This document shows positions 235-56,242 of a DNA stretch of 64,000 bases, one piece after another; the first letter of the stretch is position 1; every line of letters begins with the position of its first letter. This DNA is from Bugula neritina (lineage: Eukaryota > Animalia > Bryozoa). The DNA lies in the NCBI GenBank assembly GCA_964035545.1, contig OZ037773.1:10445751-10509750 (forward strand). Direction: 5' to 3'. The position numbers and the translations under genes were made by a program. The notes under the pieces were generated by a model. The model was not told the origin of the DNA. It saw only the letters and a program-made list of their open reading frames with translations, and did not search any database.

Positions 235-3200
235 TTATCTATGTTCTGCATTATTACCCTCTGCATCTAGTGTTCCTGTAAAAGAAATTAACATTTCAAT
301 TAATTTCTTTGCAGCAGTCTGCCTATGAGGTCAAAAACTATTCTCAAAAAAAATGTTTTTGCTATATTGACTGAACTTATAAGGATTATAAATAGCAATT
401 ATGCATAATTATGACACCTAGTGTGACACCTAGAGTGACACTTGTGATACCTAATGCGGCAGCTAGTAGTGTGACGCTTGTTGTGACGCTTAGTATGACT
501 GGCTTCATGTCGCTTTAAATACAGTTTATTCTCAATCACAGTAAACAACTTTAATTCAAAGCAATAAACTAAAATAATAATTTTGTATAAATATATTATA
601 TAAGATTTAAGTATTTCACAAGTATCATAGGTATTTACAGGCATGCAGCCACAAGTCTGTAGAATTCTTACATCATATATAAAATCTATCAAATTTTTAG
701 GAAACCATTCCAGGGTTCTTCTACTGCTCCTATTTCCAGGTTTATACGAGTAATACTTTATATTTTAGCTAGTTTTTTGGAATTGTTAAGCACTAATCAT
801 TTACCAGTTCTGGCTTCATCTGCTTCTTTCTCTCCATCTTCAGCCGTTTGCTGTGATTGTTTAACAACCACACGTATGTTCTGTACATACAAATAGGAAT
901 ATGTTATATGAGATGATCAATAGGAACAATTTATACACACTATAAACAGGTAGCCTACATTAAAATGTTATGCACTTATTCATTACAACAAATTTACATT
1001 AATGCAGTTTTAAAACTGCTGAATCCTAAGTTTTTTTATGCTTTAGTTACAATAGAAAGATGCAGTAAATTTTATTATGATATATGGCTATTATTTGTAT
1101 TGGAACAAAACTTTGCTCTTTTAATTTCATAGTGATTATAAATACTATAAATGCTTTCCCTGAACTATTTTTAAAAAGAATTTTACAATTATCGCGTTTA
1201 TATAACAGTTTGCGTTTAATCCAAATATTTACTGGGTGATATACTTAAGTCTGACCAAACTTTAGAAAAGAAAATCATTACTATTTTATTATACGTACAA
1301 TTGTAGAATAATAGCTATAAAAATATTTTTCAAGAAAAAATACATGCTAGAAGCACGTGAGGGTGATTTTATACAACACATTAAACTAGTTCCAGCAACC
1401 GCTTATAACACATGTCAGCTTATTATTTTAAACAACTTATTTAAATTGAAAAACTTGCTTAGCTTTAAAAATTATACCTTCATCTCCCAATCTATATCAT
1501 CCTGGGTTTGTTCAAGCTGTTTAAAAGTTTTAGATCTCATCTCTTCTTCCAACTTTTGCTCTTTCAACGTCTGTATATGCCCCCTAGCAATCTTGGTTCT
1601 TTCAGCTATTCTATCTCGAGCGTCCATAATATCTTCTTGCAGGTCACGATACTGTCCATCAAGTTTTCTATAACTTAATCTTTCATTATCCAACTTTTGC
1701 TGCAGATCTCTGTTTAAATAGATCAGTAACCGATTACTTACAATTACATTAACAATCTAACTGTAGTAACAGAGTTGTGCTAAACGTAAAAACCCTCCTG
1801 TTCATGCAGTCACTATTGCTATAAATTAGAGACAATATATAGGTATATAAAACTAAACTTCAACTTTCCTATTTTCAACATCTAAATGTATACATATTTC
1901 ATCTATGTGACTATTTATACTCGTACTTAGTAAAAATAAAATATTATAAACAATGTATATCAGAAAAACAAAAAAATAATTTGGAAAATGTGAAAACGTA
2001 TTAAAACATACTCTATTTCTATTTGTAGTTCTTTTCTTTCTTCAACACTTAATTTAGGTTCTTCAGCTTCTCTTTCTCTTTCTGCTATTATCCTAAAATA
2101 GTAAAGATTAGTGAAGACAACTTAATGATATTTTATTCAACTTGAGAAACAAATTATTGGACAATCTTAAAATTTTTTCATTGTGAATATGTTTATAAAT
2201 TCAATTTTGCTACAATTGCCTTATTATTATATGATTAGTTTTAATTATCGTCTCCAACCTAATTTTATGGAAAGCTTTGTACTGCTAATTTCAATTAGCT
2301 GCAAAATGAATTCTTTGACTTTTTATAGAAGTTTGTTTAATTTTAGTTTCAACTAAATTGAACCCATTTTATCTTGATATTATACTGCATGTCTAGAATT
2401 AAATCAAGATTGCTTATAGAGGCTATATTTTTATCCCAGGTTATCATATTTATAGAATAAACATAAAAAGAGAATTTTCCCAGCTAACAAGTTATTATTG
2501 AGTTTACACGCATGTAATATGTTGATTAGGAAATCACGACTACATTGAAATACCTCATATTAGCATCAGTATCATATAATATTAACAGATAAAGACTAGA
2601 TTCCACTCAGCTAAACAACATATTTGCATAAATTATATATTATTATGCTAAGCACTGCATCTCAATATGACAGGTTATGCGCAGATAAAAGGAAAACATT
2701 GATGTGGAATTGTTTTCGTATACTATATTAGTTATATTTCTGCCATTTTACTGGGCATGTCAGCAAAATTTAATTAATAATTATACTAAGAAGTTATGTG
2801 CTAACACTATAGTTTCGTACGATATATAATATATATATAATTTATAAAGTTAAATCCTGCTTTGTCAGAAAGTTTGATAATTCTTGGATGTAATACATTA
2901 ACATTGTTGGTGCAAATACAGCCAAATTCCCAACTTAACCCCAAACCCCATAACCATAGCCAAATGTAACTATACTTGGCTCCATCAGAAGTACTTTTAT
3001 TGGCACTTGAGCAGTTTAATCTTGATACTCCTTTCACTATGCACCATCCTTAGATAAGATGTAGGATCAAATTATAAACAAACAATGCTAAGCTATTTTG
3101 ACATCCTATAAAAAGCTATAGAATAACAGAAGTTTAATTAGATATAGATAGCACTGTATAATTATAGCTTTTTCATCAAGAGAAGACTAAATATTGTTTA

Positions 3201-4252
3201 TGCATCATATGTTAGAAAAAACACGTACTTTGTATAAGTTTCTAATATTTTCAAGAGTGTTTCAAAATCTTTTGTTGGCTGCATGTATTTCTTAAGTTTC
3301 TCCTCTTTCTACAATTACATAATAAGAGTAGGTTGTATCACATAATAATTGTTATAAATAATTATTATGAGTTGTGGCCTAACCTTAATATGTTGTAAAC
3401 TAGCCAACAAACAATTATAGTAATTTATTATCCGTAGAATAATCTTGCCTTATTTTTTTTTTCTAGACAAAAGCAATCTTTTGTCTCGATTAATTTTTTT
3501 GAAATTTCGGCATAGAAATCTAGAAAATTACATCTTTCATCTTCATCATCGAAGCTGTGAGAGGTTTTTTTGTGAACAATCTTATGCCGTGTGTCTCTGA
3601 AGTTTTTAATTTTCTTAGATTTTTCATCTTGGCTTAAAAATCCATCTGGTACCTTTTGAATGAGTTCGTCATAGTGCTTGTCATATATGATGAATATCCA
3701 TTCATGCATCAGTTCCAGGACAATCTCGTTCAATTCATCCTGGGTTGACGTTTGAAACCTTCTATTAGACAGTTTAGCAGGGACTGCCTCATTCTCAAAC
3801 CATTCAAAAGAACCTATGTCATCATCGGTGTAGAGTTTGTTTTGATAAGCTTTTGCTCTATTGTAGTGATTATGCAGCACTTTTTGGAAAAGTGCTGCCA
3901 GCTTTGGTGTCTTCAATCCTAAGGGACAACTTTCTGAAACCTGTCTTTTTATGAAGACTGTTTTTTGCAACTCCCCCAATTTATTTTTTACTCGATTTGC
4001 ATCTTTGTTGCAGCTATGATAAATATCCCAAACAATGGACTGGATGAGCAAAGATTCCAATTTACCAGCCAAAATGACAGCCACAGACAGGTCTGTCCAT
4101 CCTTTTAATCTGCTAGTGAGATCTTCTGCAGTACACCCTGATTGACTAGTCTGAGATTCTTGAGTAGCTGTAGAAACTTGTTTTGGTCTGTTAGTAAAAT
4201 TTTGAGCAATTACATTAGCCCAAGTTCCAGAAGCCCCTTGCTGGCTCATCAT
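235..4252 (-). CDS. HEPN-like domain + coiled-coil protein, paralog A (~437 aa; coding exons 4252-3449, 3308-3229, 2092-2012, 1709-1478, 880-805, 275-235)
   Basis: The 276-aa ORF (3428-4258) and 73-aa ORF (1472-1693) join in frame through phase-compatible splice sites (first intron AAG|GCAAGA GC-AG, the rest GT-AG). The same exon structure recurs in paralog C. Motifs GKLESLL and RDTRHKIVH (3589-3572); later exons are E/K/R/Q heptad-rich. The last exon is the least certain. Confidence 0.8.
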
Positions 4253-4475: not shown

Positions 4476-7085
4476 AGACTATACAGTACATTACTTGTAT
4501 ATATGGTAATACTACAGACTATACAGTACATCACTTGTATATGGTAATACTACAGACTATACAGTACATCACTTGTATATGGTAATACTACAGACTATAC
4601 AGTAAATCACTTGTATATGGTAATACTACAGACTATACAGTACATCACTTGTATATAGTAATACTACAGACTATACAGTACATCACTTGTATATGGTAAT
4701 ACTACAGAATATACAGTACATTACTTGTATATGGTAATACTACAGACTATACAGTACATCACTTGTATATGGTAATACTACATACTATACAGTACATCAC
4801 TTGTATCTGGTAATACTACAGACTATACAGTACATCACTTGTATATGGTAATACTACAGACTATACAGTACATCACTTGTATATAGTAATACTACAGACT
4901 ATACAGTACATCACTTGTATATGGTAATACTACAGACTATACAGTACATCACTTGTATATGGTAATACTACAGACTATACAGTATATCACTTGTATATGG
5001 TAATACTACAGACTATACAGTACATCACTTGTATATGGTAATACTACAGACTATACAGTACATTACTTGTATATGGTAATACTACAGACTATACAGTACA
5101 TCACTTGTATATGGTAATACTACAGACTATACAGTACATCACTTGTATCTGGTAATACTACAGACTATACAGTACATCACTTGTATATGGTAATACTACA
5201 GACTATACAGTACATTACTTGTATATGGTAATACTACAGACTATACAGTACATCACTTGTATCTGGTAATACTACAGACTATACAGTACATCACTTGTAT
5301 ATGGTAATACTACAGAATATACAGTATATCACTTGTATATGGTAATACTACAGATTATACAGTACATCACTTGTATATGGTAATACTACATACTATACAG
5401 TACATCACTTGTATATGGTAATACTACAGACTATACAGTACATCACTTGTATATGGTAATACTACAGACTATACAGTACATTACTTGTATATGGTAATAC
5501 TACAGACTATACAGTAAATCACTTGTATATGGTAATACTACAGACTATACAGTACATCACTTGTATATGGTAGTACTACAGACTATACAGTACATCACTT
5601 GTATATGGTAATACTGCAGACTATACAGTACATCACTTGTATATGGTAATACTACAGACTATACAGTACATCACTTGTATATGGTAATACTACAGACTAT
5701 ACAGTACATCACTTGTATATGGTAATACTACAGACTATACAGTACATCACTTGTATATGGTAATACTACAGACTATACAGTACATCACTTGTATATGGTA
5801 ATACTACAGACTATACAGTACATCACTTGTATATGGTAATACTACATACTATACAGTACATTGCTGTATATGGTAATACTACAGACTATACAGTACATCA
5901 CTTGTATATGGTAATACTACATATTATACAGTACATCACTTGTATATGGTAATATTACAGACTATACAGTACATCACTTGTATATGGTAATACTACAGAC
6001 TATGCAGTACATCACTTGTACATGGTAATACTACAGACTATACAGTACATCACTTGTATATGGTAATACTACAGACTATACAGTACATCACTTGTATATG
6101 GTAATACTACAGACTATACAGTACATCACTTGTATATGGTAATACTACAGACTATGCAGTACATCACTTGTATATGGTAATACTACAGACTATACAGTAC
6201 ATCACTTGTATATGGTAATACTACAGACTATACAGTACATCACTTGTATATGGTAATACTACAGACTATACAGTACATCACTTGTATATGGTAATACTAC
6301 AGACTATACAGTACATCACTTGTATCTGGTAATACTACAGACTATACAGTACATCACTTGTATATGGTAATACTACAGACTATACAGTACATCACTTGTA
6401 TATGGTAATACTACAGACTATGCAGTACATCACTTGTATATGGGTAATAGTACAGACTATACAGTACATCACTTGTATATGGTAATACTACAGACTATAC
6501 AGTACATCACTTGTATATGGTAATACTACAGACTATACAGTACATCACTTGTATATGGTAATACTACAGACTATACAGTACATCACTTGTATATGGTAAT
6601 ACTACAGAATATACAGTACATCACTTGTATATGGTAATACTACAGACTATACAGTACATCACTTGTATATGGTAATACTACAGACTATACAGTACATCAC
6701 TTGTATATGGTAATACTACAGACTATACAGTACATCACTTGTATATGGTAATACTACAGACTATACAGTACATCACTTGTATATGGTAATACTACAGACT
6801 ATACAGTATATCACTTGTATATGGTATTACTACAGACTATACAGTATATCACTTGTATATGGTAATACTACAGACTATACAGTACATCACTTGTATATGG
6901 TAATACTACAGACTATACAGTACATCACTTGTATATGGTAATACTACAGACTATACAGTACATCACTTGTATATGGTAATACTACAGACTATACAGTACA
7001 TCACTTGTATATGGTAATACTACAGACTATACAGTACATCACTTGTATATGGTAATACTACAGACTATACAGTAAAATACAGACT
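4476..7085. repeat. 38-bp minisatellite (GACTATACAGTACATCACTTGTATATGGTAATACTACA), about 68 units, in intron 1 of paralog A
   Basis: Contiguous tandem units with point variants and no spacers. Confidence 0.97.
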
Positions 7086-7460: not shown

Positions 7461-7846
7461 GACCTGCTCTTCGTATTACTCCGCACTAGTATTGTTGCCT
7501 TAACAGATCACATTTCACTCAAGTCATATTGCCAAGCATAGAATAGTTTATTGACTATGATAAAAATAAAAAGAGTAACAAAACAGTTTTGTAGAACCAC
7601 TATGTGATTAGATATCCTTAGTTTTATCTTGTCATATGTTTGCGGCATAAACAGTAAAAAGGGCAGATATGAACTGCCACAACTATGTTTTTGTCATCTC
7701 ATTGTTCGAAGTTAATCGAATGCATAATACGTTGTTTTATGGATTGCTTCATTCATTCTATAATACTTCTATAGGTAACTCCACTGCCGGCAATTATTTG
7801 TTTAATAAAATAACCTGTAGTTGTGCAGCTATGAAGCTATATATAC

Positions 7847-8590
7847 TGTAAACTATCATCCCTGGTTTGTAAACAGGCACAATGTGGTCTTCAGTCTCTA
7901 CTGATGTTTTATTGGTAAAACTGTCGTGAAAACTACAATTAATGAAATTGTGAATATGCTATAATGAATGATAATATGTGATAAAACTTTTATCAGTGAT
8001 AATTTGACACTAACTAATAAGCTTCAAATAAAGAACAAGTCTTGCTATAAAAATCAGTATACACCATCTAAATTATTAAAATTGATATTAAAAAAGGATA
8101 ATACAAATGCCATAAATGATTGTCAAAAATACTACAATAGCAATAATTACCTTGTTAGACCATCCAGGAATGGAGCTTATAACTTTGATGTTAATGTAGT
8201 AGGTATTTATTCTCTACTTTGACAATATTGATTTAAATGCAACAAAATATTTAATATAACATAAGTGAAAAGTTACTCAGCAGTTTATGCTACATGTTAG
8301 CTGACTGAAAGTGTAGCATAGAATGAGAGCTGAGAGTAAAATATACTTCAATGGATGAATCATTTCAGGAAGCTGATGGTGTAAAAAACTATTTATATAA
8401 CTTAGTCATAGTGAAATCATACACATGAGGAAATCTTGTTGACTTTCGTGTGCAAATTTGTCATAGCTATAAAAGCAAAACAGCTACATATACATGACTA
8501 ATGTAATGGTTTTCTAATTATGGGCACGTTGGTTAACTTTGTTTGTTTTGATGAGAGCAAGAAATTTCACTGGCATTCCAATTAATTACA
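7847..8590 (-). repeat. 3' LTR of BEL/Pao element (744 bp)
   Basis: Direct repeat of 15720-16463; TG...CA ends. Confidence 0.97.
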
Positions 8591-8637
8591 CTCCCACCTG
8601 AAATTTCTAAAAGTGACTTGTAATTTTGAATGTATGT

Positions 8638-11600
8638 TTAGCTCGATCGGACTAGTACAACTAATTTTGATATTGGTCGAATTAAATAGACTCTTTTATT
8701 GGAGTCTTTGGGGTATGTTTTACTACCAACAAGCACCCTAACTGATCTAACAACGCTGTCATGAGACAGGTTGCATTCTACGACACGTGCTAAAGGCCAC
8801 TGATTTCTTACTGTATTGTCATCACACAGTAGAACGATATCCCCCACCTTGATCTCTGGTACTTTATTTACCCATTTTTGCCGCGACTGTAAATAAAGCA
8901 AGTATTGCTTGCGCCAGCGTGTCCAAAATTCATTTGCCAACTGCTGGACCACTCTCCAACGCTTCCTCGCATATATGTCTGCCTCTTCAAATGTGCTTGG
9001 AGGTGGTAGAACAACGTCAGACTTCATAGTCAACAACATGTTTGGGGTGATTGGAAGCATGTCATCAGTTGTTGAGGTTAATGGGCGACAGTTTATGATG
9101 GCCATCACTTCATAAAACAAAGTTCGTAGCAAAGAGGTAGAGAGCCTCCCACCATGTCTCGTTCCAAGGCCTTGTAGCACAGAGCGGATAGTCCTTATCT
9201 GCCTTTCCCACACTCCTCCAAAATTGCTAGAGTGAGGAGGGTTGAAATTCATTGTGATGTTCATAGATTTAAGTTTGCTGTCGGTCCCATCACTTTGTAG
9301 AAGACTCGCGGCACCAATGAAGTTGGTACCTTGGTCTGATTGAATTGTCTGAATTGGACCCCTAATGGCTACCACAGTCCTGATAGCGTTTATAAAGCTG
9401 TCAGTAGTCATGTCCTCTAAAAGTTCAATGTGAACAGCTCGTGAGGCCATACATGTGACTATCAAGCCATATCGTTTCGATTCCTTTCTACCATCCTTGA
9501 CAATAAAAGGGCCGAAACAATCTAATCCACAGTGGGTGAAAGGAGGGGCTTTGTTAACTCTCACTGATGGTAATGTTGCCATTTGTGGTGTCAAGGGTTT
9601 AGCTTTGATTCTTTTACATGTTACACAGAGACGTAGCTTTGATGAAATTGTGGATTTACCACCAATGATCCAAAATCCCTGTGATCTTATTTTAGACAGA
9701 GTATACTCTAAGCCAAGGTGTCCTAGTTTTGCATGTGTGTCATTTATGATAAGCGTAGTGAGATGACTATGCTTAGGTAAGAGTAAAGGATGTTTTTCTT
9801 CGAATGATAGCAATTTACTGTTTTGTAGCCTTCCTCCCACCCTGAGTAGACCCGCCTTATCTAGAAATGGGCATAGTTTTGCAATGGAGCTATGCTTAGA
9901 TGTAGTCTGAGTTTGTTGGAGTTGCTTGATTTCTAGAGTGAAGAATTCTGATTGAACTGACTTGACCAAAGAGTGTAACGCTTTTTGGCGTTTCTCTTGC
10001 TGAGTGAGAGGGGTTTTGCATAGTGCTGTTTGGATTCTAGCAATAACCTTAAGAGTGTAATCTAGGTTAGAGAAAATGGTTATACGCTGACTAAGAGGAG
10101 CAAGGATGTGTTGAGTGGCTAATGCAACTTTCACTTCTTGATCGTCATGTGAGTTGATGAATTTTTTCTGATGAGGGAGTATGAGAGGTTCATTCCACAA
10201 GAAGTCTGGTCCTGTGAACCAAATGCACTCAGGAGAGAAAATTTGCTTTGGTGATAACCCACGTGATGCATGATCTGCAGGGTTGAGTTTAGTTGGGACA
10301 TGAAACCAGTTGTCGGCATTGGAGCCGTCACGGATTTGCTGAACTCGATTTGCAACAAATGTGTGATATCTAGCCTGTGTGTTCTTTATATAACCAAGAA
10401 CTACTTCTGAGTCAGAATAAAAGTACTGAGCTACATTGTCCATACCTAGCTCTTCTGCTGCCTTGAGGCTTAAATCTACAGCCCCACGTGCTGCTTGAAG
10501 TTCCAATCTGGGAACAGTAATAGCTTTGAGCGGAGTGACACGACCTTTGCTACAGATTAAAGCAACATGCACACGTTTGGCTGGGCTTACAAATCGCAAG
10601 TAGGAGCATTGGCCGTAGCCCGTTGTACTCGCGTCGCTAAAGGTATGGAGCTCAACCTTAGCAGGTGTTCCAAATGATGATGGTACGTAGTTTCTAGGAA
10701 TTGATAGGTGTTCAAGATCTTTGAGGCTTTGTTTCCATGGCAACCATTTTGCCAGCATGCTTTCATCTAAAGGATCATCCCAGTCTAAATGTTTTCTGCA
10801 AAGATCTTGGAGAACCATTTTACCTTGCAGTATAACCGGTGATATGAGGCCAAGTGGATCAAAGACCGAGGCTACATTTGAGAGCACACCTCGTCTAGTG
10901 TTGGGCTTATCAGCGAGATTAACTTGAAACTGAAAGGAATCTTGCTCAGAATTCCACATCAATCCCAAAGTTCTTTCAGTTGGAAGACAGTCAGAGTTTA
11001 GGTCAAGATCATGCAGAGTTGCAGATTGTTCAGATTTGGGGAATGAATTTAATACTTCTTTCTCGTTAGAAAGAATCTTGTGCAAGTGTACTTTACCTTG
11101 TTGGCAAATTCTCATTGCCTCAGTGAGTACTTTTGTTGCAGATGTTGCGTCAGGCATACTAAGCAAGCCGTCATCCACATAGAACTGATTTCTAATGAAG
11201 TTTCGGGCTTGTTGACTTGATGGATCATCTGTGCTGTATTGGTCAGCCAGATAACGTAGGCCATATGTTGCACATGCAGGAGACGAGGTCGCTCCAAACA
11301 CATGCACTTTCATGCGGAACACTGCTATTTCACCACGTTCATCTAGCCAGAAAAATCGGAGATAATCTGTATCTTCCGTTGCAACACGAAATTGGTGAAA
11401 CATTCGCTCAATATCACATGTAACAGCAATCTGTTCCTGGCGGAAGCGAAGGAGGATACCAGTTAGACTGTTTAGATAATCTGGACCTGTCATGAGATAG
11501 TCGTTTATGCACTTTCCATCTGTCTTTGCAGCACCATCGAAGACTACTCTAATCTTGCCTGGCTTCTTTGGATGCCATACCTCGAAATGTGGTATGTACC

Positions 11601-14600
11601 ATGTGCTGTCCTCATGGCTAGCTAAGCCTTGTGGAACTATTTCAGCCTCACCCTTGCTAATGAGGTCTTCCATGAACTTTTTGTACTGATTTTCCAAGTT
11701 TTGATTCTTAGAGAACTTTTTCAGTAGTGAATTGAATCGGTTTTTTGCTGTTTTAAAACTGTTATTTCGTGGTGGTTTGTGTTTGAAAGGTAGAGGCATG
11801 GTGACATGACCATCAATGATCTTTGTTTCTTGTTTCATGAGAGACAAAAATGCTCGGTCTTCTACAGAAGCCGCTTCTTTGTCTGTTACACATTCCTTGA
11901 AATCTTGAGCCAATATATTTATTATTTTGTTAATTTGTTTTGATGTTTCAGTTTGGCATTTGAAAGATACTGTGGTTTTAGCTTTCTTGGGTGAATGAGT
12001 TACGGTTTTATTGACTATTGTTGTTTTGCTGCCTGAATTGTCATCATGTGTGTTATTTGTAGCTAGACTACCCATGATAACCCACCCTAGGTCAGTACGT
12101 ACGCCAAATGGTTCATCGTCTGCGTCGTTTCCCACTACTACCTCTCTAGGTTTGAAGGCTAATGGGCAGTTGCCTCCAATGAGTAGACCTACTGAAATGT
12201 TTTGTCCCTTGACCATGTTTTTTGCCAAGTCTTGTAAATGTGGCCAGGCGGTAAGAGCACCCGCCTGTGGAATAGACTCATACTTAGCAGGTATTTCTTC
12301 TGCAGAATACACATTAGGAAGTTTCACCTCCTTATTGCAGCTATATCCTTTGATAATTAGGTCATCGGTTACCATTGTATCTAGCTCAAAGTTTTGGTGT
12401 GTCATTGTTGCCATTGGCAGTTTAGTTGGTTTTTTGGTGCATGTGAGTTGTTCAACAATAGAATTGGTTATATAACATGAGTCGCTGCCTGAGTCAAGGT
12501 TGGCATATGTTAATACTTTTGTATGTGGATCTTTGACAGAAGAAACCCAAACAGGAAGAGTCATAGACATGAGTGTTTGTGATGTATTTATGGAAAGATT
12601 ATTGCATACTGTGCTATCTTTATTTTGGTTTGAACATTGCATTTTACTTTCATCTGCTTGCTTTGTGGGTTGAGATGTGTATTTCTGGTGAAATATTGTG
12701 GGATGAGCTTGCTTACATGTCTCACATACTGGTTTCATGTTGCAGTTTTTGTAACTGTGACCGCTTACGGCACATTTGAAACATAAGCTGTTGCTAGCAA
12801 GGAAGTCATTTACTTGTTGAGCAGAAAGTTTTGCTAAATTCCAGCAGTGAGCAGTGTGGTGTTTCCATCTGGGTTTTTTGTTTGAGAGGCAGTATGCACA
12901 TTCTGGTTCTTTTCTCTGCTTTTGGTCAAATGACAGGCTGTTTTGTTGTTTTGCTGACTGGCTGTCAGTGTGTTGTGACTTATTAGCATGTTTTTGTTGA
13001 TTTTTGACTAATTCTGAAGTTTTTGAAACTATTGGTGTTGGTAATGTTGTTTCAGATTTTAATGTAATTGAGTGTTTGCTGTTGTTTTGTTTGGTGATTG
13101 GCTTGAATGCAGTTTTACTGGACCCACTTTTATATTTTTCTCTCAAATTGCTACAAGAAATTTTAGCCTCATGTGCTACAAAGTCTGCAAATTTATGAAA
13201 GGAAGGGAACACTTTTCTCTTTTCCTCCTCTGCAATGGCATGTCTTAACCATCGTTCTTGAAGGTTGTTGGGCAGAACACTCGCTAGCTTTTTGTTCTCC
13301 CGTTTTCTGTCCAGGACTTTTAAACCAGATATCTGCCTTGAGGCAGATAGACATTGGTTTAAGAAGTAACTGTAACTCTTGAGAGATTTGGCATCAGTTA
13401 CTCTAGGCCATGCTTCTAGTCGGTCTAGAAACTGCTCTTCAATCAGCTCTTCCGAACCAAACTCAGTTTCGAGAGCATGTAATGCATCTTGATACGCATT
13501 TGAACTTTGCAATGAAAAATAGCCCCTTATAGCCTGCTTGGCATCGCCATCCACATACTCTCTCAACAAATGGAGCTTCTGTAAATCGGTATATGGACAA
13601 GAACCAATCAAACCATCAAAGGCCAGCTTCCAATCTGCGTACTCAAGCGGATCACCAGTAAACTTGTCAGGAGTGGGAAGATGATTGGCTTGCATTGTCA
13701 TAGCGGCGGCCATTGAGTCACCTATACTCTTCCCTATAGCAGCAGAGAAATCTGTAGTGGTCAGATTGGTAAGTGGGTTAGGTGATTGCAAGTGTGTATG
13801 TGTGGGATGAGTATTTTGGTGTGTGGGAAGATGAGCAGCTGAGTTGACTTGTGGATATTGTTCATAAGGATCTTTGTGGATACCTGGGCTTTGGTGAGGC
13901 AACTCCTCCTTAGTCATTAAAGACTGCTTTATATCGTGAGCTGGTTGACCTCCAGTTGATGGGAATTGATTTGAGAGGTCAATATGATGTGGAGAATGCA
14001 GAAATGGTGAAGGCTTCGATGAGTTATGAGATGCTCTAGAAGGGGGTCTCATGAGAGTATCTCTAAGCTCAGTTTCAAGCTCATCGTCTAGGGCTTGCTG
14101 AAATGCATTTAGCTGAGCTTTCTCTGCATCGATTTCAGCTTTGAGTTTCAGCTCGGCAATGTGGCCTTTGCGAGTGAGGATTTGCTCTTTGTGCTTGAGC
14201 TCAAGACGCTGTATTTCCTCTTCAACCTGCCGAGCTTCACACTCTGCTTGAAACTTTGCTTCAGCAGCAGCAACTTTAGCCGCAGATTTAGCTAATTGAG
14301 CTTTATAGTATGATGCGTTAGATTTGGAAGATCTAGATGTACCAGTAGTTCTTGTTTTCCAAGAACCACTAGCGGAATCAGGTGCATGAGATGAGGATAT
14401 GTCACTAGCTCCAGAATGTCTAGAATTGCCAATATGGTGACTAGAATGATGAGATTTCTTTGACTTGGAGTGATTAGATTGATAATCAGAACTATGTACG
14501 CTGACGGATTTGGCAGGCCCAGCGCGTTCCGACTCAACTGAATTTTTTGACTTACTCGAGGAATGACTAGCATGCGATTTGACAATTTTTGAATTATCTG

Positions 14601-15006: not shown

Positions 15007-15719
15007 AGGCTACTGAATTTGAGTGCCAGCCAATGAAATTAATTGCTCTCAAAAAGTTTCTAATGTATGATTGTGCAATAGTGCATGCAAAACTAAGTAG
15101 TATTTGTCTAATATATGTAGCTGAATTTGAAAATTGAATACTGCACCTACTTGCAGTATAAGACTGCCTCTATATGTATGATTTCACTATTACACAAGTA
15201 AATTTGATACCTAGTGTCAGTGATAAATAATATAAAGAACAGATTTACAGAATGAGTATAAGGAAATGATTCCCTATGACTACAAAAAGACAAATATTTT
15301 CAATATTACAATACCCAGAAAAGAAATTATTTTTTAATCAAGTCTTGTGTGATAAAAAATAGTTTCTGTGTAATGTTTGATCAAAGCTAGCAACGTTCTA
15401 CTGAATTCCAATGAGTCTGATACTGCTAATTTGTGTGATTAGCAGTGAATGAATTCTTAGAAGTAATGGTTACTTAGCTGTAACTTGTATGTATGACAGG
15501 AGTGTGAGTGCTGGTTACTATAGTGGTTGGCAGTGTAGCTATTGTTGACAATGCTGGAGACTTGGCAGTAGAGTTGATGGATGCTATACTGATCTAACAA
15601 TGCTGAGGCTGGATCGGTAGTTGTCTTTTCTAGCTGCTGTTTGTCTCGCTGGTCTCAAGTTAGCGCAAGCCACTGGTTATAGGATTAGCAAGCTGTTTAC
15701 TCCAGTCACAAGTTTTCAC

Positions 15720-16463
15720 TGTAAACTATCATCCCTGGTTTGTAAACAGGCACAATGTGGTCTTCAGTCTCTACTGATGTTTTATTGGTAAAACTGTCGT
15801 GAAAACTACAATTAATGAAATTGTGAATATGCTATAATGAATGATAATATGTGATAAAACTTTTATCAGTGATAATTTGACACTAACTAATAAGCTTCAA
15901 ATAAAGAACAAGTCTTGCTATAAAAATCAGTATACACCATCTAAATTATTAAAATTGATATTAAAAAAGGATAATACAAATGCCATAAATGATTGTCAAA
16001 AATACTACAATAGCAATAATTACCTTGTTAGACCATCCAGGAATGGAGCTTATAACTTTGATGTTAATGTAGTAGGTATTTATTCTCTACTTTGACAATA
16101 TTGATTTAAATGCAACAAAATATTTAATATAACATAAGTGAAAAGTTACTCAGCAGTTTATGCTACATGTTAGCTGACTGAAAGTGTAGCATAGAATGAG
16201 AGCTGAGAGTAAAATATACTTCAATGGATGAATCATTTCAGGAAGCTGATGGTGTAAAAAACTATTTATATAACTTAGTCATAGTGAAATCATACACATG
16301 AGGAAATCTTGTTGACTTTCGTGTGCAAATTTGTCATAGCTATAAAAGCAAAACAGCTACATATACATGACTAATGTAATGGTTTTCTAATTATGGGCAC
16401 GTTGGTTAACTTTGTTTGTTTTGATGAGAGCAAGAAATTTCACTGGCATTCCAATTAATTACA
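15720..16463 (-). repeat. 5' LTR of BEL/Pao element (744 bp)
   Basis: Direct repeat of 7847-8590; minus-strand AATAAA at about 15781-15786. Confidence 0.97.
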
Positions 16464-19650: not shown

Positions 19651-19766
19651 GTTTCAGTTGTAATCTGAGTAAAACTGCTTTCAACTGCATAATGTATGAA
19701 TTGATTGTCAAGTATTGACATAGTAATCAATAAATGCTGCAGAGAGAGGAATTTATCTGAATATAA

Positions 19767-25335: not shown

Positions 25336-25344
25336 TCTCTACAC

Positions 25345-36524: not shown

Positions 36525-38885
<2,361 letters not shown>

Positions 38886-41900: not shown

Positions 41901-42150
41901 CTATACAGTATATCACTTGTATATGGTAATACTACAGACTATACAGTACATCACTTGTATATGGTAATACTACAAACTATACAGTACATCACTTGTATAT
42001 GGTAATACTACAGACTATACAGTACATCACTTGTATATGGTAATACTACAGACTATACAGTACATCACTTGTATATGGTAATACTACAGACTATACAGTA
42101 CATCACTTGTATATGGTAATACTACAGACTATACAGTACATCACTTGTGT
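38939..42150. repeat. 38-bp minisatellite of unit B (about 50 units), interrupted by a MITE
   Basis: Same consensus as 4476-7085. Confidence 0.96.
39384..40700. mobile_element. Non-autonomous TIR DNA transposon (MITE), Tc1/mariner/pogo-type TA TSD
   Basis: 21-bp TIR GGGGTAACGGGGGCACAACGG (39384-39404 / 40680-40700). TA duplication confirmed against the satellite unit as empty site. Internal TGGCCCATTGTGCCCC repeats; no transposase ORF. Confidence 0.9.
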
Positions 42151-42923
42151 ATGTATAGAAACTATTTGTACAAACTGAGAGGAAGTTTCTAGAACTTCTA
42201 CCAAACACAAAGCATCACCTTAACTCAGTACCACCCATTGGAAAAACAGTCTGACAAACACAAATCACATTAAATGATAATTCTTCTCCATTATTGCATG
42301 TTTCATAATATAGTGTGAGTACTGAAGGGTTAGGTGCATAAATGAGATGTCAGACTCTCAGATACTTTACATAAATAAACATCATATAGCTTATAATCTT
42401 ATTCAGTACCTTTCTGGTGGCACAATAAAATAACTGCTGAATCATACCTATTTAGAAGTTTGAGCTGTCAACTTTTATCTGCTCTCCGTGAAGTGTCACT
42501 GCAGTAGTAGATACATGAGTAGTTATATTCTTGTTAAACCAATCAAATGACATGCTCTTCATATTCCTCCGCACTAGTATTGTTACCTTAACAAATCACA
42601 TTTCACTCAAGGAATATTGTCAAGCATAGAATCGTTTATTGACTATGATGAAAATAAACAGAGTAACAAAACAGTTTTGTAGAGCCACTATATGATAAGA
42701 TATCCTTAGTTTTATCTTGTCATATGTTTGCGGCATAAACAGTAAAAATAGCAGATATGAACTGCCACGTCTATGTTTTTGTCACTTCATTGTTCGAAGT
42801 TAATCAAATGCATAATACGTTGTTTTATGGGTTGTTTTATTCATTCTATGATACTCCTATATGTGTCTCCACTGCTGGCCATTATTTGTTTAGTATAATA
42901 ATCTCTATTTATGCAGCCTTGAA

Positions 42924-43533
42924 GCTATATATACTGTATATACAAGACAGTACATTGTATATCTGTATATAACTATATATACTGTATACAAGACAGTACA
43001 TTGTATATCTGTATATAACTATATATACTGTATACAAGACAGTACATTGTATATCTGTATAACTATATATACTGTATATACAAGACAGTACACTGTATAT
43101 CTGTATAACTATATATACTGTATACAATACAGTACATTGTATATCTGTATAACTATATATACTGTATACAAGACAGTACATTGTATATCTGTATAACTAT
43201 ATATATATATATTGCATACAAGACAGTACATTGTATATCTGTATAACTATATATACTGTATACAATACAGTACATTGTATATCTGTATAACTATATACAC
43301 TGTATACAAGACAGTACACTGTATATATGTATGTCTATATATACTGTATATACAATACAGTACATTGTATATCTGTATAACTATATATACTGTATACAAA
43401 ACAGTACACTGTATATCTGTATAACTATATATACTGTATACAAGACAATACATTGTATATCTGTATAACTATATATACTGTATACAAGACAGTACACTGT
43501 ATATCTGTATAACTATATATACTGTATACAAGA
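42924..43533. repeat. 44-bp minisatellite of unit B (about 13 units)
   Basis: Same consensus as 16464-19650. Confidence 0.93.
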
Positions 43534-44170
43534 CGGTTGTATTATTAGTAGAACTGCTGTCAACTGCATAATGTATGAATTGAGTGACAAGTATCGACAT
43601 AGTAATCAATAAATGCTGCAGAGAGAAGTTTATCTGAATATAAGGGGAGTCCCCCTGCATACTATTGTCTAACCTGATCAGGTATTTACTCTCATAGTAA
43701 TCTATACAGATGAGCAGTTCAAATAATATATAACAATAGAACCTTTCTATTACTGATGTCAGCATGCACATATCACATTAACTTGTGATATTATCACTTT
43801 TAGACTATGACTATATGCTATTTTTATAACTAACGCTATTACCCTACCCTATAACTATTGATTATCCAGTGTATCCTTTTACAGAGTTTAGCCTTTACTT
43901 GTTGTTTGAGTAAATAAAGGGGGCACCTTACCTGAAAGTAAGGGGGGTCCCCTGTATACATCATCATATGACTTATATACTCTCAGTCTATCAGTATAAG
44001 TATACATTTTCTTATCAATATGAGTTCTACTTATAGTCACTGGAGAGTTTTATTTTATATCTGCATTACATTGAATATATTTCTGTAGTTGATTATATTA
44101 CATATTTCTGCGGTTGCAGAGTGCATATATGCTCATACACTACTAACATGTTATATCTGACATATCTTAT

Positions 44171-45430
44171 TGTAATATTGCAAAGATTTGCAGTTCAATC
44201 AGAAGCAACACAACTCCTATGCTACGCATTGCTACACTAGCTTAGTCATTAGAGTTGATCCTGACGAGACGCGAAGTTACCTTCCAACCTAATCACAATG
44301 ATATCATATGGATTGGTTAATGATCATCTGATCATCCTTGCATTAGAACAGCTGCGCACTTATAGAAAGACTATGATGCGCCAGCCCCACGCCGTCTTAG
44401 AGTAGATCTGGCTTAACTAAGTAGTTTGTGTTCATGCTAACAATTATGTAGTTTACTATTTCTTGTAACGTTTTCACCTACAATTATATAATTTGTGTAC
44501 AGTTAATCTTCTCTCTATACTCGACATTCTGAATTGTTAATCTGAAAGCATCTTATCTTAAATATCCACACATATTGTGAACCTTATAAATTCACAACAG
44601 TGATGACAGTAGTGAAATGAATTTAAGACTGATGCTCCTGACCAAGGAGTAGAAGAGTATGGCAAGTGAAGACTATAGAGGCGCCTTTCATCCAAAGCTG
44701 ATTGAAGACAAACCGGCAGCTGTGGAGGATATCATAGGCGACACATGGACAGGTATTATTTGCGGGTTCCCACCTTCTGCGAAGAGAAAGATGTGGAGCA
44801 ATTTATTGCTGCGTTCAGCGATGTGGCAGCCATCTGTAGATGTCACTCTGATATAGTTGCGGCTATCTCTGAGAGGAACAGCCAAACCTTACGGTATCAG
44901 CCCGGTATCTTCGAGGCATTGAGAGACTGGTTTGGGCGCACTGCTCAAGATGTGTGTGTAAAGTTACAAGGCGTGATCCTAAAGCACTCTTGAGAGAACA
45001 CGCAACTGTAGTTGAACGGCTGGTGCAAGTCGCTTATGGCGATTTGCCGGTAGAAGGCCGGACGAGTTCAGTGCTAGAGGCGTTTCTCCAGCCGGTCAAC
45101 AGCATCTGCTTGAAAAGGTATTTGCTGGTAGCCAAACTTGACACAATGGAGAGGGCCCTTCAATTTGGAAATGCCTATTTCTAAGCCGATAGCACATGTC
45201 GGCCTGGGGTGAACGCGCAGCAAGTGGAGGCTGGCAACAAGTTGAGTACAAGTTTGGTCAAGGAGCTCCTGATCAAAATTAGGTATCTGCGACAACAGCC
45301 AGTCGCCGACAGCCTTTTCAGCTGTTGGCAGACATCCCGTAGTTGTTGGGGGTGTGGTAGTGGAGAACATTTCCTTAGAAGCTGTCCCTACAGTGAGAGG
45401 AAACGGTTAAACCTCGACGGCCCATAGGCC
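44171..45430 (+). mobile_element. Degenerate 5' fragment of a related Gypsy element (probable LTR ~44171-44599, decayed PBS, frameshifted gag)
   Basis: MDRYYLRVPTF..EKDVEQFI..FSDVAAICR, LREHATVVERL.QVAYGDLP and CWGCGSGEHFLRSCP align with the gag at 34862-35737. TGATGACAGTAGTG (44601-44614) resembles the Leu PBS. The LTR left boundary is uncertain. Confidence 0.85.
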
Positions 45431-49213: not shown

Positions 49214-49491
49214 ATATGCTATTTTTATAACTAATGCTATTACCCTACCCTATCCTATAACTATTGATTATCCAGTGTATCCTTTTACAGAGTTTAGCCT
49301 TTACTGGTTGTTTAAGTAAATAAAAAGGGCACCTTACCTGAAAGTAAGGGGGGTTCCCTGTATATATATCATCATGTGACTTATACATACACTCAGTCTA
49401 TCAGTATAAGTATACATTTTCTTATCAATATGAGTTCTACTTAGTCACTAGCTGGAGAGTTTTATTTTATATCTGCATAACATTGAATATA

Positions 49492-50006
49492 TTTCTGCAG
49501 TGAATTACACTACATATTTCTGCAGTGAATTACATTGCATATTTCTGCAGTGAATTACACTACATATTTCTGCAGTGAATTACACTACATATTTCTGCAG
49601 TGAAATACACTACATATATTTCTGCAGTTAATTACACTACATATTTCTGCAGTTAATTACAGTAAATATTTCTGCAGCTAATTACACTACATACTTCTGC
49701 AGTAAATTACACTACATATTTCTGCAGTTATTTACACTACATATTTCTGCAGTGAATTACACTACATATTTCTGCAGTGAATTACACTACATACTTCTGC
49801 AGTGAAATACACTACATATATTTCTGCAGCTAATTACACTACATACTTCTGCAGTAAATTACACTACATATTTCTGCAGTTAATTACACTACATATTTCT
49901 GCAGTGAATTACACTACATACTTCTGCAGTTAATTACACTACATACTTCTGCAGTTAATTACAATACATATTTCTGCAGTGAATTACACTACATATTTCT
50001 GCAGTG
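49492..50006. repeat. 25-bp minisatellite (unit B copy)
   Basis: Same consensus as 20211-20632. Confidence 0.9.
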
Positions 50007-50291
50007 TCATAGCTGAATAGCTAAAGAATGTTACATATTACCATAGAAAGTTGCTGAGGTACAATATCAACCTATGTATAGTTTATGGCAGCAAGTTCTG
50101 TTAAAAGATGACTTTAGCTACTGGTGAGTAGGAATTGCAATATTTCTACCTGATTCTGAAATATTGCCAACACTTACCAACAAAACCTTTGGCTAAACTG
50201 TCATTACTATATACAGCAGTTTAGAATAGAATATATACATTCTCAATAGGTTGATATACGCTATTACAAATCATATAATACAATGATTTAC

Positions 50292-50682
50292 TTTGTATCC
50301 TATGTGTAAGTGTAGATATGTATATACATTGTATTTTATGAGTAAGTGTATATATGTATATACTTTGTATCCTGTGAGTAAGTGTAGATATGTATACACT
50401 CTGTATTTTATGTGTAAGTGTATATATGTATATACTTTGTATCCTGTGGGTAAGTGTAGATATGTATATACTCTGTATTTTATGTGTAAGTGTATATATG
50501 TATATACTTTGTATCCTGTGATTAAGTGTAGATATGTATATACTCTGTATTTTATGTGTAAGTGTATATGTATATACTTTGTATCCTGTGAGCAAGTGTA
50601 GATATGTATATACTCTGTATTTTATGTGTAAGTGTATATATGTATATACTTTGTATCCTGTGAGTAAGTGTAGATATGTATA
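50292..50682. repeat. 36-bp minisatellite with alternating variants (72-bp higher-order dimer); shorter copy at ~20965-21110
   Basis: AGTAAGTGTA(G/T)ATATGTATATACT(C/T)TGTAT(TTTATG/CCTGTG), with the variants alternating. Confidence 0.88.
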
Positions 50683-50829
50683 TCAAGAGTTGTCTCACCT
50701 ACCACATCAATTGATAACTTTGCTAATAGTTTTAGTTACACACACAACTCCACATCACAGTTTTCCATCTCCACACTAGATAGCATAGTAAGTTAGGGCT
50801 TATCTCCCCTGTATAACTTTCTATTGCAG

Positions 50830-50974
50830 GTATGACAAGGCCTGCTCTATTGCTAAACATGCTCATAGAAATAAACTTACACTGAAAGAAGCAGCCTTAG
50901 AACTTGGTCTATTAACTGAGAGTGAGTTTGATGAGTAGGTACGCCTCGAACTCATGATATCTCCTAAGCCATGA
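50830..50974 (+). pseudogene. FH: Isolated last exon of fumarase (second copy) with nonsense codon
   Basis: Near-identical to 27476-27620; TGG>TAG at 50937-50939. Upstream exons are absent. Confidence 0.9.
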
Positions 50975-52022
50975 GATCTCATACTAAATTTACCCTATTT
51001 CTTCCACAGTATTGTTGCATTAGTATGCTATATACTAGTTTATTATTCTGTATATAGAGAGTAGACAACTCTAGGTATAGGTCTCAGTATTATTGTTTAC
51101 AGAATATAGCAAATATGTTTATCTGTTTCCTTGGTGCTGCATTTTAATTACTATTAGTATAGTCTGTGTTCCTGTGTTTTACTAGTATAGTCTGTGTTCC
51201 TGTGTTTTACTAGTGTAGTCTGTGTTTCTGTGTTTTACTACTAGTATAGTCTGTGTTCCTGTGTTTTACTACTAGTATAGTCTGTGTTCCTGTGTTTTAC
51301 TATTAGTATAGTCTGTGTTCCTATGTTTTATAGTCTACGTTCTCAAACAAAGCATTTTATTTATTATCTAGCCAAATATTTTACTATTGTGTCAAATAAA
51401 CGGTGAGAGACATCTTCTCTGCTGTTATATTAATAGATGTGACTGCATAACACAGCCTCCATAACCAACTAAAGTATACAAGTCATAACCTTCCCATCAC
51501 CCAGTTTATTTTCTAATAATTTTGTGAAGAAAAAGCATAAGTATAAAAACAGTGTAGTATATATAATAGCAAATATTATTATCATTTCTTTCCTTTTTCT
51601 GATGGGCATTTACAAACAAAACTGTTAGCAGTAAAATGTCTTTGATTTTAACAGTTACATTTTATCTATAGTTCTATATATTATATTATGTATTTATGGA
51701 TAATATTCTGTATTCACTAACACTGATTATAATGTATTATGGATTGTTAATAAATCATATATAATCGTATGTCAGACTGTAAACACTCAGCAATACTAAT
51801 AGTTGAAACAGTTTTATATATTGTGTCATCAGCCAGCTATATGTGCCAAGATCATAAACTGTCCTTGATGATGTCATACAGGAACAGTGGTTAGGCTTTA
51901 CTTTCTCTCATATAAGTCCGGTCAATCTATGAAATATAATGAAGATATTGCATTGTGGGTAAAATATATTACACTCTTTTACAATATTATAATAGAGTGT
52001 CTTTCTATTTTAATTATATAAA

Positions 52023-52314: not shown

Positions 52315-55300
52315 TTAAAACCACATTTTGTTTCTGTTAATCTTACTTTGATTAAGATTAAGTTGCTGCTCTTCTGCATCATCATCCTCTGCACCTGCTA
52401 TTCACGTAAAAGAAATTATTTTCATTATATTTTTAAAACAACAATATTCTCAAAGCAATAAATTGAAGTAACAATTTTTGTGTAGTTATATAGAATTTAA
52501 GTATTTCACAAGTTTCGCACGTATTTAAGGGTATGCAGCCACAAGTCTGTACAATTATTACATTATAAACTCCATCAATTTTTTATGAAAGCATTCCAAG
52601 GTTCTAGACGTATAGCACTTTATATTTTAGCTATTGTTCAGTACTGTTAAACACTAATCTTTTACCAGCTTTGCCTGCATCTGCTCCTTTGCTCCCTCCT
52701 TCACTTTCACTCACTTCCTGTGGTTTTTTCACAACCACACCTATGTTCTGTACATACGAATAGGAATAAGTTAAATGAGATGATCACTAGACACAGTTTA
52801 TACACACTAAACAGGTAACCTATGGTAAAATTATATGCGTTTAATTATTACGACACTATTAGCAAAATTACATAATTTTAGTTTTAAACCTTTCAAATGT
52901 TAGATTTCTTGACCCAGGTAGTTACAATAATACAGTACTTGTATGACACAATTAATTTTATAATGATTATAACTATTTATATTTAAACAAAGCCATTCTT
53001 ATTTACCTTCATATTAAATAGGTACTATAAAGACTTATATAAATGTTTTATGCTTTTTGAAAAAGAATTTTACAATTATCTTGTTTACATAGCATTTTGT
53101 ATTTAATTCAAATATTTACTGAGTGATATACTCAAGTTCTCACCAAACTTTAGAAAAAAAATCGATGCTATTTATACGTAGAATTGTAGAATAACAGCTA
53201 CAAAAAAGTTTTTCAAGAAAAAATACTTGCTTGGGGCACAAAAGAGTGATTTTATACAACACAATAAATTAGTTCCAGCAACTGCTGTTGCAGCCATTCC
53301 TTATAAGGACATATAACACATGTCAGCTTATTATTTTAAGCATCTTATTCGGAGAAAAAAAACTTTATTAGAATTAAAAAATATACCTTCATCTCCTGAT
53401 CTATATCATCCTGGGTTTGCTCAAGCAGTTTAAAAGTTTCAGTTTTTATCTCTCTTCCCAACGTTTGCTCTTTCAATGTCTTTATGTGCTCCCTGGCAAT
53501 CTTGGTTTTTCCACTTATGTTAGTATGAGCTTTCTTAGCATTTTTAAGAAGCTCAAGATATTCTCTAGTAAGTTCTCCAGATTTTAATCTTTCTCTTGCC
53601 ATCTCTTGCTTCAGATTTCTGTTTAAATAGATTATTAATCCTTTACTTACAATTACATATTAACAATCTAATTGTAGTAACAGAGTTGTGTTGAATGTAA
53701 AAACCCTCCTGTTCAGTCACTATTAGAGACAATATATAGGTATATAAAACTAAACTTAAACTTGTTGAGTTTCAACATCTAAATGTGTATATATTTTATC
53801 TATGTGACTATTTATACTCGTACTTAGTAAAAATAAAATATCACAAACAATGTATACTAGAAAAACAAAAATAATCAAGAAAATGTGAAAAAAATATTAA
53901 AACATACTCTATTTCTCTTTGTAGTTCTTCTCTTTTTTCAACACTTAATTTAGGTTCTTCAGCTTTTCTTTCTCTTTCTGCTATCATCCTAAAATAGTAA
54001 AGATTAGTGAAGACAGCTTTAATAAGATTTTATTCAACTTAAGAAACAAATTATTTGGCATTTTTTCATAGAACAGATGGATAATCTTAAAAATTATTCA
54101 TTATGAATATGTCTATAATTTCAGTTTTGCTACAATTGCCTTATTATAATAATATGATTAGCCTTCATTTTCTGTCTCCCACCTATAATTTTTAAACTGC
54201 AGGCTATATGAAAAGTTTTGTACTGCTAGTTTCAATTAAATGAAAATGAATTCTTTGATTTTTTAGAAGTTCGTTTAATTTTTGTTCCAACGAAATTGAA
54301 TCCATATAGGCCTTTTATCTTTATATATTATACTGTCTAGAATAAAATCAAGATTGCTAGAAGTTATATATTTATATCCCCGATCATCATATTTCTAGAA
54401 CAAACATAAAGAGAGAATTTCCCCACCTAACAAGCTATTAAGTTTACACACGTAATATGTTGATTAGTATATCATGACTATATATATCGAAAGACCTCAT
54501 ATTAGCACCTGCATCATATCATATCATATTATATCATATAAACTAGATTCCGCTCAGCTAATTGTGTAATAAGAAGTTTTGGCTAAACAAAGTGTTTGCA
54601 TAAATTATATATTATTATGCTATAGGCACTGCATCTCAATATGACAGGACATGCACAGATATAAGGAATACATTGATGTGAAATTGTCTCCTACTGTAAT
54701 AGTATTTCTGCCATTTAAGCTAAATTTAATTATTAATTATACTAAGTAACAGTGTGCTGAAATTGTAGTTTTACATGTCATGTATAATATATATAATTCA
54801 TACAATTAAATCCTAAATAAAAGTTTGATAATTCTTGGATGTAAAATATTAGCATTGTTGGTGAAAGAACAGCCAAATTCCCAAATCCCTAACTTAGCCC
54901 CACATAACCATAGCCAAATGTAACTGTACTTGGGTCTATCAGAAGTACTTTTATTTACACAATCAATTTAGTTCTGGTAAACTTTCCACTCTGCACCATT
55001 TTTATAGCAGTAATATCAAATTGTAAATAAACATTGCTAGGCCATATTGACATCCTAAACAGGCTATATAATAACAGAAATTTAACGAGATACAGATAGC
55101 ACTGTATAATTAGCTTTTTTATCAATAGCTGAGAAGACTAAATACTTTTTATACATCTTATTTAAGAAAAACACGTACTCTGTGTAAGTTTCTAATACAC
55201 TCAAGAGCGTTTGAAAATCTTTTTTTGGCTGCATGTATTTCTGAAATCTGTCCTCTATCTACAATTATATTATTAGTAGGTCAGTTATAATAAATATTTG

Positions 55301-56242
55301 CAATAACTAGGAGTGGCCTAACGACAGTAAATTTAATATTTCATAAATTGACAAACTCAAAAGGTAAATTACTACTGTGTAAAATAATCTTGCCTTATCT
55401 TTATCTTTTAAACAAAAGCAATCTTTTTCTTTGATAATCAGTGTTGAAATTCTTTTATAGAACGCTAAAAAATCATCTTTTTCTTGCTCTTTCTGGAACT
55501 TATGAATTGTTCTACAGTGAACAATCCTATTTCTTATCGTTCTAAATTCATCTGTGGTGAGTTTTGTTTTAAATTCCTTTAAAAAATCTTGTGGTACTCT
55601 ACTAATAATTTCGTTATAGTGCCTGGAACAAATTACAGATACCCATTCATGCATCAGCCCCAGAGCCGTCTCTTTCAATTCCGCCTTGTCTGATGGTCGA
55701 TAGCCTGCTTTTGAAAATTTTTCATAAGTTTCAAAGTTTTCAAACCAATCAAAATGAGTTGTTTCTAGGTGATAGCGCCTACCATTAAATCGTTCTGATT
55801 TATAATCACGAAGCAGTTCTCTCAAAGGTTCAGCTAGTCTTGATGTCTTATTTTTTAAGACTAAAGCATCACAATCTTTCTTTTGGTAATATATTTTTAG
55901 GACTGCTGTTTGGAACTCCTTCATGCTTTTTAATATTTTGTCTGCATTTTCCTTGCATTGATCATAAATATCCCAAACAATGTACTGGGTCAGCAAAGAT
56001 TCCATTTTACCAACTAAAATCACTGCCAACGACAGGTCCGTCCATTCTGCTTTTATTCTGTTAAGATCTTTTGCAGTAGGCTCTGGTTGGCTAGTCTGGG
56101 ATTCTTGAGTACCTCTGGACTCTTGTACAGGTTGACTGGGCTGGGATCTCTGAGCAAGTCTGCGCGCAGGCCCTGGTACTCGTGTTTGCTCAGGAAGAGG
56201 CCAATCATCAACATTTAAATCTGAAGCCCCTTGCTGGCTCAT
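52315..56242 (-). CDS. HEPN-like domain + coiled-coil protein, paralog C (exons 56242-55394, 55258-55179, 53988-53908, 53618-53387, 52747-52666, 52394-52315)
   Basis: The 323-aa and 85-aa ORFs join through the same splice sites as paralog A, including the GC donor. Motifs GKMESLL and RTIRNRIVH (55534-55517). The last exon uses a shifted acceptor and is less certain. Confidence 0.8.

Follow-up and report, generated by a model that had tools for sequence, protein, structure and literature searches.

Do three neighbouring genes of the bryozoan Bugula neritina encode a branch of the HEPN ribonucleases (RNases) that current profile libraries miss? HEPN RNases are central effectors of prokaryotic defence, as in Cas13, Csm6, abortive infection and toxin-antitoxin pairs, and vertebrates have RNase L; from invertebrates they are, to our knowledge, known mainly as annotated DZIP3-like domains. 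The question arises from a 64-kb window (the whole stretch of 64,000 nucleotides analysed here), in which three intron-containing paralogs, named A, B and C, lie on the minus strand and were proposed, from their letters alone, to form a lineage-expanded family of HEPN endoribonucleases with a coiled coil. The follow-up presented here points, with moderate confidence, to a lineage-restricted, fast-evolving branch of the HEPN superfamily made up of putative RNases. Lineage-specific HEPN expansions of invertebrates have already been described (PMC3710099; PMC9646362); the kind is known, and the family itself, its architecture and the phylum are new.

The three motif-bearing open reading frames (ORFs), of 276 amino acids (aa) in A, 252 in B and 323 in C, align with each other over their full length, and each contains one Rx4H hexapeptide at exactly the position given by that first, sequence-only reading (Table 1). 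Translated in all six frames, the window contains the pattern R-[NHD]-x-[IV]-[IV]-H three times and no more, namely in A, B and C, and all three hexapeptides end in the codons ATT GTT CAC, as had been observed. The further motifs listed at that stage are likewise common to the three proteins when they are aligned (WTDL..AV.L..K.E, W-x-E-N, L-[MI]-H-E and H-x-F...F...Y).

The published HEPN signature consists of Rx4-6H, with N, D or H after the arginine, plus an upstream acidic residue, which is located in helix 2 and typically within an Ex3[KR] motif, and inserts are frequent between helices 2 and 3 (PMC3710099). In the family studied here, Rx4H with a polar residue after the R is found at the end of the predicted core helix 3. 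Among 15 members, which are 20-59% identical, the columns D15, L142, R183, H188, H193 and F195 (numbering of the C domain) are invariant, so that the predicted conservation of R and H in homologs is borne out, and the residue following the R is always N or H. The second helix carries G-K-x-[ED], the acidic residue of which is kept in every member of the window family.

The shared domain is about 225 aa long and predicted to be all-helical. The conserved acidic residue is part of the first hairpin (WTDL..AV.L.GK.E), after which comes a helical insert of about 110 aa, which includes a hypervariable hairpin, W-x-E-N and L-M-H-E; R-[N/H]-x-I-V-H-x4-H-x-F belongs to the second hairpin, where it lies at the end of core helix 3. 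At the C-terminus, small exons add a charged helical tail of about 90-170 aa, and the S/Q/P-rich N-terminus of A and C is optional and disordered. AlphaFold models were obtained for the C domain (predicted local distance difference test, pLDDT, 75.6; predicted template modelling score, pTM, 0.78) and for the compact member P0008 (pLDDT 78.2, pTM 0.76). Both contain the first hairpin, the large helical insert and a further helix, with the motif at its end and at the start of the loop that leads into a long final helix; the R sits in helix 176-186 of the C model and in helix 160-172 of the P0008 model, and the conserved E/D in the second helix. This layout reproduces the helix order and the positions of motif and insert published for HEPN domains (PMC3710099) and therefore supports the HEPN assignment; a different predicted fold had been set in advance as the finding that would speak against the sequence-only reading. 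The best structural matches in the fold search are minimal HEPN or HepT chains (2hsb AF_0298, 1wwp, 7ae2 and 8xdj), which are 8-13% identical to the models, are covered over nearly their whole length and span the models from the first to the last helix. Csm6, Las1, Swt1 and Cas13-like chains are found among the structural and the protein-language-model neighbours.

Named language-model clusters nearest to C are HEPN_Swt1 (0.90) and STY4199, and those nearest to B are Csm6-HEPN, RnlA/LsoA, RiboL-PSP, DUF4145 and Cas13a (0.82-0.86). Profile matches below threshold, each of them involving only one or two family members, were obtained for HEPN_Apea, RiboL-PSP (E 0.12), Cthe2314 (E 0.037), DUF4145, the PADLOC model CARF_HEPN (E 8.6e-4) and Cas13c (E 2.3e-3); apart from these, the NCBIfam search gave only scattered single matches without meaning. 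In a PDB sequence search with the family profile, all matches were at chance level, and a bacterioferritin match around the motif was rejected as a coincidence. By the profile test, the domain is not a DZIP3-like HEPN: the corresponding profile, PF18738, matches none of the 15 members, even at E 10, and it recovers one genuine DZIP3-like domain at another locus of the genome with 74 bits. Taken together, the place of the motif, the fold search, the neighbours found by the language model and the faint profile matches support a diverged HEPN domain whose Rx4H site is intact, which upholds the core of the earlier proposal of a HEPN RNase, short of a match at any curated profile threshold. True HEPN homology is considered highly probable, and an active RNase somewhat likelier than an inactive protein.

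Several observations weigh against this assignment. None of the Pfam, NCBIfam or PADLOC models scores at a curated or otherwise convincing level; the best HEPN match, HEPN_Apea, has 13.6 bits against a cut-off of 24.4. Foldseek, run against PDB structures with each of the two models, produced nothing below E 0.4, and Atlas shape searches with both returned unrelated families at template modelling (TM) scores of at most 0.34. The motif region has a pLDDT below 50 in the first model, and the acidic Ex3[KR] motif is complete, with K/R at +4, only in B-like members and in a sister family described below. A homodimer prediction for two C domains scored 0.00, which is counted on this side and is evidence neither way. 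No RNA run containing A, B or C was found in the RNA run search, and no sensor, partner, antitoxin-like or nucleotidyltransferase gene adjoins the paralogs in the window. The domain could be no HEPN at all, and instead a new all-helical domain with a convergent or coincidental R-x4-H, such as a bundle that binds a metal or a ligand through the two histidines. This is quite unlikely: the independent methods, weak as their signals are, all indicate HEPN and no alternative, and the helix order and the positions of motif and insert fit the published superfamily (PMC3710099). The diverged HEPN domain is favoured.

The distribution of the family is narrow. In the 216-Mb genome, the family profile finds only the loci of A, B and C (C 1.2e-107, A 7.6e-101, B 1.6e-70), a three-locus match far beyond chance. 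Among 1.84 billion cluster representatives, searched exhaustively with HMMER, there are 11 such proteins, all of them short ORFs of the exon-1 type. Those that were traced are all encoded on small contigs from JGI sample 3300003318 (the related sample), one of them also in a Logan run; these contigs bear the label AY690838, the accession under which GenBank lists the mitochondrial genome of Bugula neritina, and the sample is therefore probably a Bugula-type bryozoan. Word-index protein searches, including a broad alignment, returned relatives only on a handful of such short contigs. The family is thus lineage-restricted.

A sister family is present in the same genome. One of its ORFs, 1.5 Mb upstream of the window (L007:323-1042), contains both E-x3-R and R-N-N-I-V-H, and together with P0012-P0015 it makes up the sister family, located at G000:C9 8.86-9.02 Mb. 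The two families are homologous over 199 columns (hhalign 95.8%, E 7.6e-9, from non-overlapping alignments), at an identity of about 18-20%. In the sister genes the domain is also encoded by a single exon, which ends at the same place as exon 1 of the window family. For the member P0014, a 1.1-kb Logan contig consists of three genome blocks, skips two introns and therefore derives from spliced RNA; the boundary of exon 1 has the equivalent position in it, and the sequence beyond encodes a charged helical tail. By analogy, this transcript supports the gene architecture of A, B and C, not their expression.

A search with the sister profile revealed more distant relatives at 18 further match places in three other genome regions, with weaker tandem clusters at G000:C6 15.63-15.65 Mb (L013-L016), at G000:C8 8.23-8.25 Mb and 7.18 Mb (L017-L019, L022), and on C9. 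The term "lineage-expanded", used in the sequence-only reading, thus suits this wider set, the window subfamily having only three copies. On C9, L007 and L020 keep R-N-x-[IV]-V-H and L021 lacks the H. The C6 and C8 copies have R-[IM]-K-E-D-V-[QL]-N in place of Rx4H and have thus lost the H; their ORFs are open and measure at least 164 aa, with 263 aa in L014, the sole complete copy, and 266-287 aa in the search frames. The loss of R or H was judged on inspected copies in C6 and C8 and on one C9 copy. That distant paralogs lost these residues and remained open makes their strict retention in the window family look selected.

The same relatives bear on the possibility that the domain is HEPN-derived and serves as a non-enzymatic binding or adaptor module, in which R and H would be retained because they bind a ligand or RNA. 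HEPN domains without catalytic activity are familiar, that of sacsin being one (PMC3710099), and the paralogs without the motif remain open, which would fit such a module. Against this stands the pattern within the family itself: the R, the polar residue that follows it and the H are retained throughout 15 fast-evolving sequences, and the acidic E/D is kept, as expected for a catalytic site. A non-enzymatic module is therefore regarded as unlikely, and a putative RNase remains the preferred reading.

In terms of evolution, A has the counterparts L008 and L009 in the related sample, B has L010, and L011 is a C-like copy; these contigs also have open first exons, and their introns diverge from those of the window by 4-8%. 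Between A and its orthologous contig, the domain part of exon 1 is 84% identical, compared with 96% for intron 1 and 92% for intron 2. The insert of A contains a hypervariable patch (Table 1), and a smaller spot of divergence lies just ahead of the Rx4H motif. Similarly, A and C share 64% identity in the exon-1 domain and 83-89% in introns 2-3. Against the related-sample contigs, A has a ratio of nonsynonymous to synonymous divergence (dN/dS) of 1.2-1.4, B one of 0.8 and C (versus L011) one of 1.1; the apparent excess over 1 rests on few substitutions. Relaxed constraint also yields a dN/dS near 1, and both points add to those listed above. Outside the insert, A has a dN of 0.124 and a dS of 0.068, the latter near the intron divergence, and inside the insert both values are about 0.36. 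Gene conversion, old alleles or alignment error could each account for this raised synonymous rate.

As a safe statement, the compared sequences indicate weak overall constraint, few strictly kept core sites and a hypervariable insert. Such a pattern is typical of conflict genes, though no proof, and together with the tandem duplication and a dN/dS near or above 1 it suggests a role in genetic conflict; by analogy, this may be an immune or toxin role. More specifically, the locus could be a hypervariable system by which a colonial animal tells self from non-self, or a selfish "killer", in which the insert gives a constitutively oligomeric HEPN RNase its partner or target specificity and balancing selection maintains old allelic lineages. 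This would account for the divergence of exon 1 of A, which exceeds that of its introns even at synonymous sites (insert dS against an intron divergence of about 0.04-0.08). Such a system is given only a very slender chance. Contigs from one DNA run agree with the assembly over the region of gene A, with zero differences; a second, diverged contig over 851-1854 is most simply the region of paralog C, and is uninformative on alleles.

The gene models speak to yet another explanation, namely that A, B and C are decaying or non-functional duplicates drifting neutrally in a repeat-rich, transposon-invaded region. Downstream exons were identified by conservation among the three paralogs plus splice signals, which gave five exons and 426 aa for A, five exons and 452 aa for C, and at least three exons and at least 315 aa for B, the last exon of which was not found by comparison with the related-sample contig. 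All modelled introns have AG acceptors, GT donors and compatible phases, except for a GC donor at intron 1 of A and C, and the junctions are in frame throughout. Decay would be in line with the dN/dS of about 1, the lack of a matching RNA run, the non-canonical donors and the incomplete 3' end of the B model, near which, about 0.9 kb downstream of the third exon, lies a Gypsy-like element flanked by long terminal repeats (LTRs). The element is absent from L010, the corresponding related-sample contig, and may therefore have disturbed the 3' end of B. On the opposite side, A and C are open over five exons with matching phases, the related-sample counterparts have open first exons, the sister family is expressed, and invariant core residues in 15 sequences of such low identity are not expected under neutral drift. 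Taken together, decay is very unlikely, and functional genes with a putative RNase domain are preferred.

The GC donor, AAG/GCAAGA (the slash marks the exon end), lies at 3448/3449 in A and at 55393/55394 in C, and B has a normal GT at the same position; in several related-sample copies, GCAAGA is read through. The stop codon of A is placed at 799-797, rather than near 235, where the sequence-only reading had ended the gene; a conserved alternative donor at this place leaves the end of A open. Residues E, K, Q, R and D abound in the later exons, where charged and Q residues make up 46-55%, versus 31-39% in exon 1, and where a simple, crude script found heptad-like hydrophobic spacing. The earlier description of E/K/Q-rich heptad exons agrees with this, and needs amending for B, from which the small exon 3 of A and C is absent. 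The tail might form a coiled coil. At the other end of the protein, the S/Q/P-rich segment (4136-4252 in A, 56081-56242 in C) varies in length by tandem peptide repeats; in the family member P0001, a 15-aa unit occurs in three copies at residues ~35-95, and B-type proteins lack the segment.

The predicted protein would be a metal-independent endoribonuclease whose active site would form by the pairing of two HEPN domains, as it does in other RNases of this superfamily. The helical tail would aid self-association, and the variable insert, or a partner, would control activity or target choice. Its role would be in defence or in another genetic conflict, be it antiviral, anti-transposon or self/non-self.

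Among known systems, the DZIP3/hRUL138-like HEPN domains (PF18738) of oysters, pearl oysters and cnidarians are similar in being animal HEPN domains with Rx4H, usually with N after the R, and with lineage-specific tandem expansions, which have been proposed to degrade viral or transposon RNA (PMC3710099; PMC9646362). Unlike them, A, B and C have no NACHT, Death, TPR or RING fusions, carry the ~110-aa insert and the charged tail, and number only three copies. The minimal prokaryotic HEPN proteins and the HepT toxins of HEPN-MNT pairs provide the best structural matches and share the position of Rx4H; however, they are about 120-140 aa long, have neither a large insert nor a tail, and are paired with an MNT antitoxin, none of which is seen beside A, B or C. 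Dimeric effector RNases (RNase L/Ire1 KEN, Csm6, Cas13, Swt1 and Las1) share the type of catalytic motif, with two facing domains to be expected. In contrast to these, which have a sensor or guide module (ankyrin-pseudokinase, CARF or a crRNA-binding lobe), the A, B and C proteins have none, just as the sequence-only reading had stated, and no sensor gene adjoins them.

The family indicates that a little-studied phylum harbours additional, quickly evolving HEPN branches which current profile libraries do not detect, and it offers a small (~430 aa), sensor-less protein for studying the activation of animal HEPN RNases. If activity and induction were true, an RNA-degrading arm would be added to bryozoan innate immunity, and a new profile would be gained for annotating such genes.

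Table 1. Features of the 64-kb window, numbered from its first nucleotide.
Feature	Coordinates	Strand	Basis and remarks
Paralog A, exon 1	3449-4252	-	ORF, alignment; short S/Q-rich N-terminus and whole HEPN-like domain; GC donor
Paralog A, exons 2-5	3308-3229, 2092-2012, 1709-1478, 880-797 (span 797-3308)	-	Splice sites and phases; charged, heptad-like helical tail
Hypervariable patch of A (~aa 74-140)	3830-4029	-	Insert between core helices 2 and 3; 60-78% identity, 36-nt indel
Rx4H motif of A (RHKIVH)	3589-3572	-	Six-frame translation; R and H invariant
Paralog B, exon 1	38208-38885	-	ORF, alignment; HEPN-like domain without S/Q-rich N-terminus; GT donor GAG/GTATAT
Paralog B, exons 2-3	38079-37997, 37284-37101 (span 37101-38079)	-	Conservation and splice signals
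Rx4H motif of B (RNNIVH)	38345-38328	-	Six-frame translation
Paralog C, exon 1	55394-56242	-	ORF, alignment; S/Q/P-rich N-terminus and HEPN-like domain; GC donor
Paralog C, exons 2-5	55258-55179, 53988-53908, 53618-53387, 52747-52631 (span 52631-55258)	-	Splice sites and phases
Rx4H motif of C (RNRIVH)	55534-55517	-	Six-frame translation
38-bp satellite array 5' of A	4476-7074	.	~220 bp upstream of A start codon
38-bp satellite arrays 5' of B	38939-39383, 40701-42153	.	Tandem-repeat analysis
38-bp satellite array 5' of C	56453-59814	.	Tandem-repeat analysis
BEL/Pao-type LTR retrotransposon	7845-16463	- (ORF)	LTRs 746 bp, 100% identical (7845-8590, 15718-16463)
Gypsy-like LTR element	28938-36220		51-57% GC; LTRs 426 bp, 99% identical (28938-29363, 35795-36220)

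The paralogs sit in tandem segmental duplications. Arrays of a 38-bp satellite, with 12-88 copies per array and 95-97% matches, begin about 55-220 bp upstream of each start codon. At an identity of at least 92%, the unit occurs at this locus only in the 216-Mb genome, and it is also found upstream of the orthologous related-sample contigs, at 94-98% identity; the array may have either a regulatory role or be a by-product of unequal crossing-over. Between the paralogs, tandem arrays of 44, 25, 36 and 31 bp recur in order (16456-21108, 27860-28044, 42925-43534, 49489-51330 and 61936-62191), showing that the duplication involved a unit much larger than the gene.

The window has a GC content of about 30%, apart from two retroelements. 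The BEL/Pao-type element, which lies between the 38-bp and the 44-bp arrays of unit A, contains one uninterrupted gag-pol ORF of 2122 aa (8638-15006, minus strand), and its insertion is very young. In the Gypsy-like element, the gag, PR-RT, RNase H and integrase frames are split over four ORFs, and its GC content, in contrast to that of the window, suggests a recent arrival. A transposon origin of A, B and C was considered and rejected; the genes lie outside both LTR elements and have a host-like GC content. Short, broken ORFs at 44745-45427 (plus strand) resemble the gag of the GC-rich Gypsy-like element and are probably a decayed fragment of a related copy.

Two other coding features, both on the plus strand, were recognised from ORF translations alone: an O-methyltransferase-like exon at 21389-21859, and exons of a fumarase/aspartase-type lyase at 24546-26534, the introns of which are full of 13-, 15- and 19-bp microsatellites.

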